From NCBI GenBank assembly GCA_964199315.1, contig OZ116699.1, positions 33,108,001 through 33,172,000 on the forward strand: a stretch of DNA of 64,000 bases. Reading direction: 5' to 3'. Shown piece after piece: positions 28,346 through 55,943 of this stretch. Position 1 is the first letter of the stretch. The number at the start of each line of letters is the position of its first letter. The notes below the pieces were generated by a model. That model was given only the letters and a program-made list of their open reading frames with translations. It did no database searches and was not told the origin of the DNA. This DNA comes from Orbicella franksi (lineage: Eukaryota). The position numbers and the translations under genes were made by a program.

Positions 28346-31300
28346 ATGGCGTCCTTCCAGAAACAAGCGATACTTCTCATATTTCTCGGTGTTTTCTTTC
28401 TGACATCAGCCATCGCCGAGCGTGTCCTTGATCAGGATAAAATCGACTGCTACCCTGAAGTTGGAAACCAAACTCTTTGCGAGGCTCGGGGATGCACATG
28501 GGAGCAATCAGGCACTAAGGTACTAAAACAGTAAAGGCCGATAGAATCAGCCATTACATGAGGAAATATGTATGTGAGTAGTTAACATAACGAAGGGAAA
28601 GTCAGATTACGCTAAAAACACAACTGCTCCACTAAGGAAATAGAAAGACCATTGGCAGGTTTGTAACAACTCTATAACCCTAAGTGACGCCAGACGGAGT
28701 CCTGTCGAGTGTGCGTCCATTTTTTATTAATCCGTTGTGATCTTGGCTTGCCTGCAGTCAGAAGTCAAGCCCAGATTTTATACACAGAAAACTCCATTGA
28801 CTACTAGTAGTTTCTCCTTTTCCCGAGCCTGTTGTTGCGAGAATATCTTATTATGATGTAATCCGATAGCGTTTTTAGCCTAGTATTTCAACCTTTTAGA
28901 GGCAGGCGTTACTCTGGCAGTTGGTTGTCACGGCAACCTATTGCAGCGGATGCATTTGATCCTTTTCATCAATTTTTTCGGCAAACAATCTATTGTTTAG
29001 CTGTCAATTTTACATTATACCTACTAAGCTGCAAACTACTTCATCTGATCTGAAATTGATACAAGATTGACGAGGATTTTTGTAGCACATTAAAATCCAT
29101 CTGCATTTGTGCGAATTTTTCTGTCAATTTAGGTAATAAAATTATCGACAAGAGAATAGAAAAGGGGCTGCTCTTTCTCTGAATTTGTGTTCTCATTTGA
29201 GGCCATTCAAGTTTGAAGTCAAGAGCGAGTGTCAAGTGTAAATATTTTTTCAAGTAAAAACAAAGGGACAGGTCGCTCCTGTCACACCACCCCTAGGATT
29301 GTCAGCAAATCAGGGAAAAAGAAAACCAGGAAAACGTAAAATTATAAGAGAATCGTCAGGTCTTATTATATAAACCAGCAGTAAGTTGCTGCTGTTATAA
29401 CTGCCAGATAACAGCTGGTATTTTCTTCTACAGGGGGTTCCGTGGTGCTTTTTTCCAAAATCGTACCGAGGTGGATACAAGATTGAAGGCCATGTGCGGG
29501 AAACACAACTAGGTTACCAAGCTACACTAAAAAGACGCTCTGCCAGTACCATATATGGGCAAGACATAGATGAGGTCACACTTGATGTAGAGTTCCAGAC
29601 AAATAACCGAGTCAGGTTTAAGGTAATGAATAAAGGTTTTCATTAATCGCAGTACTAAAGCGAGAGCTTGCTACATTAAAATAGTAGGGCATTCTCTGTA
29701 TTGACAATATTCAGTTTATACAATCTGGGATGTCTGCCTTGAAGAAATGCCCCACTATTGGACCAAACTGCTCTTAAATTGGCGGAAATGTAGCTGTGTG
29801 TGTTATCTTGGTGCTAACCAAAACATTGGACTCAAATGTCATTTTCCTTGGGCCGCCCTTTTAGATCGTATGGCTCATGGATAGCGAGGTAAAATGAGAT
29901 GTTCTCCTCAGAAATCAATGGGTCAGTTTGTTTCCGCAGCTCTATGACTCCAAAACGCAGAGATATGAAGTACCAGTACCTATGCCAAAGGCGATGTCAA
30001 AAGCTTCAGATCCGACGTACACAGTGGAGTTCAAAAACGATCCTTTCTCTTTGAAAATACTACGAAAAGACACCGATGCTGTACTGTAAGTAGAGATTTC
30101 AATACAATTTAAGACAATTTGTAGCGTAGATCGAGTGTGAGTGTTGTGAGATAGTGACAGTTGTTAATGAATAGCGCAGTTGGACATCTTGAGTGTAAAC
30201 GATAATCAGGGCCGGGTTGTTCAAAAGCCGCTCAACGCTAACCCAGGATTAAAAGTTAACCCGAGTATTAAGTTTTCTTGTATAAAAATGTTTCTCACTG
30301 CTTGTGTTTTGCGTAGCTTGAGATTATTCAAATTCAAAACTGAAGGCCAGACAATTCAATCAGAAAACTTCACCGAAAAGTTACAAAACTGAAACCAAAA
30401 TTCTCGCTAAACCCGGGCTAGCTTAATCGGGCTTTAGACGACCCAGTCCAGAGTAAAATGTCTTTTTTAACACTAACAGAATGGTTAATTTTAAGTGATC
30501 TTCGAGTTAACAGATCAACTAAACACTCGGGATATAGATCGTGAAAATTAAAGCGAGACAATAATGTTCACCAAACTTCAAAATGGCTCTCTCGGCGTTT
30601 AATTCCTGTCAGGATCAAAGGACATTGACGTTGTAGTCTAAGCACTCACCACGTTTTTAGTTTATGTATTTTAAAGGCAGTCATTTCATTCCATAGTCTA
30701 TCTTCCAGCCGAAACACATTCATAAAACTACTGACTTTTCAGATGGGACTCCTCTGTTGGTCCGTTCATATTTGAAGACCAGTTCATACAGATCTCGACC
30801 CAGCCCCCCTCGTCATTTGTGTATGGCTTTGGTGAACAGGAGCATCAGACGTTTAAACACAACTTATCAACCTGGGAGGTGCTTGCTATCTTCACTAGAG
30901 ACCAGTTTCCATTTGTGAGTAGCTCTCTAGATTTAAGTTACACTGATGTATCTATGAATGAGATCAAGACTTCGTGAACTTTGTTACTGAACTTTGTTTC
31001 TAAATGCCTGCAGAATGGAGGAAATTTGTATGGGCATCATCCTTTCTACACTTGTATGGAGAATGACGGCAAATCTCATGGAGTTTTTCTGATGAACAGT
31101 AACGCAATGGGTAAGTCTAAGTAGCATAATCACGCTCTTCTGAATTTTTATGCAGATTTCATAGTCACTGTAAAGTTTCAAAGTAAGGACCCTCCGAAAG
31201 TGCTCTAGTGATGAAATTTCATGAACACTCCCCGCCGAAAGTAACGATAATAAGAAAGGTAGTTATCTCAAACGAAATTTTGACTTGTTAAGAGAAGAAA

Positions 31301-55001: not shown

Positions 55002-55943
55002 TTCTTGTGAAAAGACGCCATTACCGGACGGTTGCAATGCAGGGGCGTTTTAAGCGAGTGGGCGCCATCGTTTTGGGGTTTTACGCCATGCAAGAGAGAA
55101 GTTAGAATGCCTGAGTCATCATTATGTGGTTGGGCAGCGGTATACCCCTACTTCAATCATCCCGAATCATCCCGGGGGATTTGGTCCCGAAGGCGATTAG
55201 TCTGCAGTCGGTTCAGTATTCACCACGACTTCGGTGCCCAGACCTCACTTGAGCCCGCTGAGTAGTTTCAAAATAACCCAGCAGGTCGATATGTATCTTC
55301 GTTTCCTGCATACAACCCAGAACTCTCCTTCGAACTCGCCTACAAAAGGCAGGGAAAGGGAGAGTTCAGGAATTGGGCGAGGGAGTAATTATAGAACGCA
55401 ACATAGTCTAGAGCTAGAGGGCTCGTGTACGATTCTTTTTTAATTTACGGATGTGTTCTATTTACGAAACCATTAAACTAAACACAGCGTTTGGCTTTCC
55501 GTTACCTTTCTCAAAAAATATTGTAGAATTATTGGCTCATTGAATCGTGAATTCATCGAGTATTTTCGAACTCACCTTGACCTAAAAATATTAACCCCGC
55601 TCTGAATTATAACCAGTGATATGTAGGTTTGGCTTGCGAAGCAAGAACTCTGAAGACTTTCCCTTATAGCCGGATAAGATGAGTCCATAGTTGTAGCCTG
55701 TGTCCAGGTGTATTCAATCGATGCCCGCAATCAACTTGTCAGACAATAATATAATAATCAATTATAATATGTAATTCATCGATCAAAGTAAGAAACAAAA
55801 GAAAATGACTGTTAGACTGATAACCAGTGTCGTCCCCATAGGCCACTACCAGTTTGGTTAGCAGTAGGAATCGAGAACTCTGGGGCGAAATCAGAAAACG
55901 AGCCAGCATTAATCACAGTGGTTACCGTCTCTCTCTCTCCGAG

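Follow-up and report, generated by a model that had tools for sequence, protein, structure and literature searches.

A tail-to-tail pair of maltase-glucoamylase-type GH31 genes in Orbicella franksi, probably an old inverted duplication whose copies diverged asymmetrically

A 64-kb window of the Orbicella franksi genome (contig OZ116699.1 of assembly GCA_964199315.1, positions 33,108,001 to 33,172,000; the term window refers to this whole stretch, G+C 39%) carries two paralogous genes of glycoside hydrolase family 31 (GH31) that point toward each other. Copy 1, on the plus strand, has a complete set of active-site residues and a C-terminal tail resembling a glycosylphosphatidylinositol (GPI) attachment signal, while copy 2, on the minus strand, has a remodelled +1 subsite and ends in H-Q-E-L, a putative endoplasmic reticulum (ER) signal. 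We estimate at roughly 0.7 the probability that the pair arose by an old inverted duplication of a single-domain gene of the maltase-glucoamylase (MGAM) kind, followed by asymmetric divergence of the two copies.

A translated self-comparison of the window gave 24 collinear blocks, running from 28.3 to 40.9 kb on the plus strand and from 55.0 to 42.9 kb on the minus strand. Gene models were rebuilt from open frames, from splice-site logic applied to both copies jointly and with full-length homologues as guides (Table 1). All 46 introns of the two copies have GT-AG boundaries, the series of intron phases is identical, and exon lengths are equal between the copies save in exons 1, 9, 10, 23 and 24. 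The genes are convergent, with 1998 nt between their stops, and their proteins are 85% identical over 894 aligned residues, far beyond chance. A first-pass annotation, made by a model from the sequence alone, had described a tail-to-tail inverted pair of 24-exon genes with equal intron positions and phases and stops about 2 kb apart, and this description was borne out by the rebuilt models. The end that it gave for copy 2, 55021, had to be revised: it is the ATG homologous to the start of copy 1, from which seven codons lead, after a frameshift, to a stop, and the usable ATG lies at 55001. The signal peptide of copy 2 is accordingly modelled 7 residues shorter than that of copy 1, with equal hydrophobicity. 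The seven-codon upstream frame has a stop that overlaps the ATG in use, and such a layout could dampen or regulate translation.

Relatives of the pair were traced via open reading frame (ORF) fragments of exon 23 to long contigs of public HiFi metagenome assemblies of related animals. The same tail-to-tail pair was found on four contigs (L016, L017, L018 and L019) of three other assemblies, so it is not an assembly artefact. The plus-strand orthologues (L016p to L019p) carry the motifs and the hydrophobic tail of copy 1. Among the minus-strand orthologues (L016m to L019m), E-(K/R)-R is found in all four, and Ser for Trp and D-K-N-E, both described below, in L016m, which is the only one reaching those exons. 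At the level of the predicted proteins, this shows that those features of copy 2 that could be compared are of long standing; the altered +1 subsite and H-Q-E-L end proposed in the first-pass annotation are confirmed as sequence features, the changes of exons 10 to 16 and the tail being conserved in the orthologous pairs. Fragments of copy 2-type exon 16 were found in close relatives only, and the walk along the contigs of two further loci (L014 and L022) reached exon 22 only. L018 and L019 come from one sample (ERZ25067879); their copy 1-type genes differ by a dS of 0.014 with no amino acid change, and their copy 2-type genes by a dS of 0.078 with a dN/dS of 0.42. They may be two haplotypes or strains in which the two genes diverged unequally.

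The orthologues also bear on the one gap in the window, which lies in intron 9 of copy 2 next to exon 10 and hides the polypyrimidine tract of that intron. The five intron nucleotides after the gap (..tgcag) form the acceptor, exon 10 follows with a good donor, the junction of exons 9 and 10 is in phase 0, and the reading frame is open through the last codon. Since the minus-strand orthologue of L016 carries the same exon 10 peptide but for one residue, exon 10 is not an edge-of-gap error. In copy 1, intron 9 (33365-33514, 150 nt) has no in-frame stop, and its retention would add 50 residues with the frame intact.

Both copies have exons whose PF01055 scores exceed the curated cut-off, and a trefoil domain is matched in exon 1 of both (E 9e-7). 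In single-exon searches against solved structures, MGAM was the best match, then SI, then GAA, and GANAB was far weaker; the same exon gave 99 bits (E 2e-28) with MGAM and 23 bits (E about 5e-4) with GANAB. Both copies are MGAM/SI-type GH31 enzymes by family, not glucosidase II. Four other GH31 loci were found in the 497-Mb genome: one GAA-like gene lies 1.4 Mb from the pair on the same chromosome, one GANAB-like gene lies on C4, and two distant, intron-poor genes lie on C15 and C10; the inverted pair was the sole MGAM-type locus found. Because the genome has its own GANAB-like gene, copy 2 is not a replacement of glucosidase II, and the "ER-type enzyme" of the first-pass annotation, if taken in that sense, has to be given up. 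The loci at C15:18.00 Mb and C10:24.16 Mb (L001, L002, L004 and L007) have long uninterrupted frames with 22-28% identity to the pair and belong to a different GH31 subgroup. When a sea-cucumber representative was used as query, most of the proteins retrieved were two-domain ones of vertebrates. Among named relatives, a fragment from Desmophyllum pertusum comes nearest, and a further relative is a Tara Pacific metagenome scaffold.

Active-site positions were mapped by alignment to the solved ntMGAM, GAA and ctMGAM chains. The +1 subsite (equivalents of D203, W406 and M444 of ntMGAM) is complete in copy 1 and reads Arg, Ser and Lys in copy 2. The Met that follows the nucleophile is present in 277 of 277 domains of 146 homologues; copy 2 has D-K-N-E at this place, and its exon 12 peptide is identical in L016m. 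After H-N, at ntMGAM 602-604, the GFG of copy 1 is replaced by EKR in copy 2, and two residues past the F575 equivalent an Asp has become Asn, a change conserved in L016m to L018m. Several positive charges are gained at the +1 and +2 sites in this way. The nucleophile (D443; D518 in GAA), the acid/base (D542), F575 and H600 are kept in copy 1, copy 2 and the copy 2 orthologues. Copy 2 and its orthologues likewise retain the Arg, His, Phe and Trp residues that form part of the -1 subsite, and the acid/base motif H-W-L-G-D-N stands in both copies. A ctMGAM-type insert of about 21 residues after the Trp of V-W-P, with a second Trp, is full in copy 1; in copy 2 it is shortened by 5 residues and the second Trp is lost with them, as in L016m. 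Among the solved chains, exon 10 of copy 1 (the V-W-P..S-L-D-W-D insert) aligns solely to human ctMGAM, at residues 403-422 of the 3TON chain, and to full-length MGAM, with an offset that presumably fits W1355 and W1369. The insert is said, in the ctMGAM structure paper, to build the outer subsites. By descent copy 2 is a member of the MGAM/SI/GAA subgroup, and by its predicted active site it is divergent, not canonical; from these replacements we infer an altered specificity.

Both proteins extend past the usual end of the family. Single-domain homologues of hemichordates, echinoderms, a millipede and a mollusc end just past the last conserved Trp and have no tail, and both tails are therefore additions. 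The tail of copy 1 consists of a candidate omega site (G-T-G), a mostly polar spacer of 12 residues, a 13-residue core with a mean hydropathy of 3.1 and two last residues. Together with the N-terminal signal it has the layout of a GPI-anchored precursor, kept in five copy 1-type genes, and on this ground it looks like a GPI-attachment signal; at sequence level the earlier description of copy 1 as a canonical enzyme with a GPI-like tail therefore stood. The tail of copy 2 adds 7 residues and has no detectable homology to that of copy 1. Its H-Q-E-L fits the PROSITE ER-target pattern [KRHQSA]-[DENQ]-E-L (cf. PS00014), and the protein has a predicted signal peptide and no membrane span. H-Q-E-L occurs in copy 2, L016m, L018m and L019m; five copy 2-type genes retain H-x-E-L directly before a stop, which is TAG after ..EL in all four orthologues.

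Divergence between orthologues shows that both lineages are under purifying selection. Over 388 shared codons, dN/dS was 0.10-0.15 for copy 1 and 0.12-0.23 for copy 2, at an orthologue dS of 0.19-0.45; between copy 1 and copy 2, dS was 0.33 and dN 0.075, a ratio of 0.23. When fixed changes were counted against six more distant outgroup loci, copy 2 had 37 nonsynonymous and 13 synonymous changes, and copy 1 had 2 and 0. For exons 1-9 these counts use only copy 2 of this genome, so the terminal branch is included. The 37:13 proportion on the stem of the copy 2 lineage corresponds to a dN/dS of roughly 0.8. This has the pattern of a burst of change in copy 2 followed by constraint, with copy 1 as the conservative copy.

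The history of the pair was further examined by quartet site patterns, using the two paralogues in each of two species. Exons 10, 12-16 and 22-24 showed orthology, and concerted sites outnumbered orthology sites in exons 17, 20 and 21. Overall, 19 concerted sites against 2 third-pattern (noise) sites were found between this genome and L018 (binomial probability ~1e-4). Paralogue dS was 0.07-0.17 in exons 17-21, against 0.5-1.0 elsewhere. Gene conversion between the 3' exons, which had been raised in the first-pass annotation, is real for exons 17-21, but the tail exons 22-24 were spared according to the quartet counts. The introns tell more about age. Between orthologues 63-82% of intron bases could be aligned, at about 80% identity, and between paralogues 11-16%, a share similar to that of introns of this genome against outgroup species at a dS of 0.6-0.9. 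In this genome 11% of intron bases align between the copies, mainly in introns 4, 14 and 17 and in exon flanks, in agreement with the earlier remark that short introns are alignable and long ones are not. Because paralogous introns are barely alignable, the duplication must be far older than one would conclude from the exon dS of 0.33. Nucleotide trees grouped the two copies to the exclusion of the outgroups with 99% support, a result toward which gene conversion biases such trees. The 13:0 asymmetry of synonymous fixed changes and the unalignable introns point, contrary to the trees, to an older duplication. A single DNA-level inverted duplication, as first proposed, is supported.

Both genes are represented in public RNA data. 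Eight runs recorded as RNA contain 35-58% of the sampled words of 40773-43010, and the contigs compared with 39400-45399 came from three RNA runs and from one run that is likely DNA. Joints in the RNA contigs match to the base introns 22 and 23 of copy 1 and introns 23, 22, 20 and 19 of copy 2, and one 736-nt contig links the 3' untranslated region (UTR) of copy 2 (down to 42517), the H-Q-E-L exon and exon 23. No frameshift or nonsense variants were found in the covered exons of the RNA and DNA contigs, and missense variants in copy 2 contigs are residues of copy 2 orthologues. That copy 2 might be untranscribed or an artefact, as the first-pass annotation had considered, is not what was found: the contigs are spliced as modelled and the pair stands in other assemblies. 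A minus-strand AATAAA at 42526-42521 adjoins the end of the copy 2 3'UTR. In the strandless RNA contigs no overlapping 3' ends of the pair were seen, the ends, at about 41880 and 42517, being at least 600 nt apart with a high-copy repeat between them; fold-back double-stranded RNA, suggested earlier for this layout, has no support from them. Opposite-strand joints at 39501/44542 and 39400/44531 were considered as fold-back RNA and rejected as mapping effects of the near-identical exon 21 of copy 1, which lies outside the compared stretch. The stretches 42000-42400, 40400-40600 and 41400-41800 reach word depths of thousands in the RNA runs and of >100,000 in the DNA-like run; they represent repeats of high copy number, located between the genes and within intron 23 of copy 1. 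At 42786, within the 3'UTR of copy 2, X6 and X16 have a 29-nt insertion relative to the assembly, which is an indel polymorphism or a species difference.

Taken together, these features suggest the following course of events. A single-domain MGAM-like GH31 gene would have undergone an inverted duplication at DNA level. Copy 1 would have retained the ancestral enzyme, with its cleavable signal peptide, trefoil and canonical active site with the ctMGAM insert, and is most likely a glucoamylase that faces outward and is held at the membrane. Copy 2 would have passed through a burst of amino acid change at otherwise invariant +1 and +2 residues, with the -1 subsite and the catalytic residues untouched, would have gained its H-(Q/L)-E-L C-terminus and would have been under purifying selection since. 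It is most likely a soluble enzyme that the KDEL receptor returns to the ER, and would act on a different, possibly negatively charged aglycone. Exchange by conversion would continue in exons 17-21, while the exons with the diverged features stay distinct. The surface and ER system proposed in the first-pass annotation stood as far as both tails are conserved; GPI anchoring, ER residence, catalytic activity and a new specificity are predictions read from the sequences. A more specific form of the proposal, that copy 2 is an active ER-resident MGAM-type alpha-glucosidase whose positively charged, Trp-less +1 site takes a substrate taken by no described GH31 enzyme of the subgroup, such as an acidic or phosphorylated glucoside or glycoprotein-linked glucose, is put forward tentatively, and we consider it doubtful.

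Several observations weigh against the preferred course of events, and they lead to different alternatives. The Met that is otherwise invariant and the Trp of V-W-P, both lost in copy 2, are residues which we take, from Pompe-disease variants of human GAA, to be needed for normal activity, changes at the equivalent positions presumably causing loss of function; copy 2 is therefore possibly a weak or dead enzyme. On such grounds, and given the stem ratio of roughly 0.8, it might be an ER-retained pseudo-enzyme with a carbohydrate-binding or chaperone-like role, selection acting on binding or folding. The nucleophile, the acid/base and the -1 residues have nevertheless all been kept in copy 2 and its orthologues across the whole range of orthologue dS, whereas dead enzymes usually lose some such catalytic residues, and this alternative is judged to be unlikely. 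The predicted locations could be wrong in another way, both tails being no sorting signals and both proteins secreted digestive enzymes that underwent ordinary subfunctionalisation, for instance by tissue. The tail roles rest on sequence; L017m ends in H-L-E-L, which departs from the consensus and lies outside the PROSITE pattern; a literature search for H-Q-E-L as a tested signal found none; the tail of copy 1 could instead be a short transmembrane anchor, and its surface location is predicted from the same residues; and the homologues of other phyla are tail-less secreted proteins. Yet both tails are additions to the usual family end, and each lineage conserves its own tail, in five copy 1-type and five copy 2-type genes, which makes the secreted alternative very improbable.

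The remaining contrary points concern copy 2 as a gene. It has lost the ancestral start and the exon 9 donor, and the assembly gap separates its exons 1-9 from exons 10-24, whose link into one gene rests on the join made in this assembly; the Asp-to-Arg and exon 9 changes are known from this genome only; the RNA evidence consists of assembled contigs, which carry neither strand nor expression level; and a copy 1-type gene in a further relative (L023) has no partner over the 9 kb that follow it downstream. That copy 2 is a pseudogene in decay, or an artefact of assembly such as a haplotig or a mis-join, is however scarcely credible, as the frame of copy 2 is open over 24 exons, the dN/dS between orthologues is low, RNA contigs are spliced, the pair is present in four independent contigs of three assemblies, and introns that cannot be aligned between the copies rule out a haplotig. 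The L023 contig (ERZ27314233; gene at 633-3385, downstream sequence to 12335) carries the GPI-like tail on the 3' end of its gene; its copy 2 may be lost or more distant, or this contig, assembled from short reads, may be a chimera.

Table 1. Features of the GH31 gene pair, in positions of the window
Feature	Position	Strand	Evidence or occurrence
Copy 1, GH31 alpha-glucosidase gene with predicted signal peptide, trefoil, ctMGAM-type core and GPI-signal-like tail; ATG 28346, stop 40929-40931, 24 coding exons, 935 aa	28346..40931	+	Gene model; Pfam matches; introns 22 and 23 backed by RNA contig joints
Copy 2, paralogue with predicted signal peptide, trefoil, remodelled +1 subsite and C-terminus HQEL; ATG 55001, stop 42932-42930, 24 coding exons, 898 aa	42930..55001	-	Gene model; RNA joints at introns 19, 20, 22 and 23 (X1, X2, X6); orthologues L016-L019
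Seven-codon upstream ORF, remnant of the ancestral copy 2 start	54998..55021	-	Direct sequence reading
Copy 2 exon 4; Arg for Asp of copy 1 at ntMGAM D203 (+1 subsite)	53115..53286	-	This genome only
Copy 2 exon 9; ancestral donor GT changed to GG, replacement donor 12 nt downstream, +4 residues	50093..50212	-	Sequence reading, this genome only
Assembly gap (single N run) in copy 2 intron 9, ending 5 nt before the exon 10 acceptor	49466..49601	.	
Copy 2 exon 10; 48 nt against 63 nt in copy 1 (15 nt shorter); Ser for Trp at ntMGAM W406 (V-W-P); second Trp of the insert deleted	49413..49460	-	Gene model; L016 minus-strand orthologue (Ser; second Trp deleted)
Copy 2 exon 12; Lys for Met at ntMGAM M444	48291..48375	-	L016m Lys
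Copy 2 exon 16; EKR for GFG	46566..46682	-	E(K/R)R in L016m-L019m
Copy 2 exons 17-21, conversion partner	44541..46206	-	Quartet counts, low paralogue dS
Copy 1 exons 17-21, conversion region	36818..39135	+	Quartet counts, low paralogue dS
Copy 1 last exon, adding 33 residues past the usual family end	40773..40931	+	Conserved in L016p, L017p, L018p, L019p and L023
Copy 2 last exon, ending H-Q-E-L, then stop	42930..43010	-	Covered by RNA contig; HQEL or HLEL + TAG in four orthologues
Intergenic region with both 3'UTRs	40932..42929	.	RNA contigs, copy 1 stop to about 41880 and copy 2 stop to 42517; high-copy repeat ~42000-42400

Among known enzymes, human ctMGAM (PDB 3TON/3TOP) is the best solved match of the catalytic exons and shares the trefoil and, with copy 1, the motifs W-I-D-M-N-E and H-W-L-G-D-N; copy 2 differs from it by the absence of both Trp of the insert region and by the Lys in place of the invariant Met. 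Vertebrate MGAM has an N-terminal membrane anchor and two tandem units, whereas the coral proteins are single-domain, with a predicted cleavable signal and a C-terminal tail. Closer in architecture are the single-domain sucrase-isomaltase-like proteins of invertebrates (Saccoglossus XP_077869040.1 and the maltase-glucoamylase of Holothuria leucospilota), which have about 50% identity, the same domain order and an N-terminal signal, but end at the Trp of the last beta-strand, with neither a hydrophobic tail nor x-x-E-L. GANAB shares the GH31 fold, an ER location and KDEL-type retention with what is proposed for copy 2, but its sequence match to the coral exons is weak, and it is retained via the HDEL of its beta subunit, not by its own tail. 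GAA belongs to the same GH31 subgroup and has the same active-site residues, without the ctMGAM-type insert. A literature search found no description of this pair or of a GPI-anchored MGAM-type enzyme in cnidarians. The pair is no new kind of system, tandem duplication, C-terminal retargeting and gene conversion all being well known.

Upstream of copy 1, two intronless ORFs at 11149-12891 (+, 580 aa) and 23851-25623 (+, 590 aa) match MFS_1_like (E 1e-69 and 3e-55, respectively). At a related locus, L015, the GH31 gene likewise has an MFS_1_like gene upstream of it, and the neighbourhood of transporter and glucosidase may be conserved. A retroelement of the long terminal repeat type lies between these two transporter genes; its ORFs at 17668-21531 (-) code for reverse transcriptase, RNase H and integrase. 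At the other end of the window, three consecutive ORFs of 166-341 aa lie at 61309-63727 (-); one short Pfam segment is matched weakly, at less than domain length, by two of them, and the ORFs probably represent a repeat element or a gene fragment duplicated in tandem.

The pair offers a natural experiment in neofunctionalisation, in which one copy would remain the ancestral digestive-type enzyme and the other had residues changed that are invariant across animal MGAM/SI/GAA enzymes, gained an ending of the ER-retrieval type and was then conserved across species. It also appears as a case in which selection keeps diverged exons apart while conversion homogenises neighbouring exons of an inverted pair, and it provides a defined target in the search for a new GH31 specificity. 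For coral biology, two carbohydrate-processing genes beside two MFS genes may be relevant to feeding and symbiosis. If copy 2 were indeed an active ER-resident enzyme with a substrate of its own, this coral clade would have a lineage-specific glucosidase system of ER and cell surface, possibly tied to glucans derived from the symbionts.

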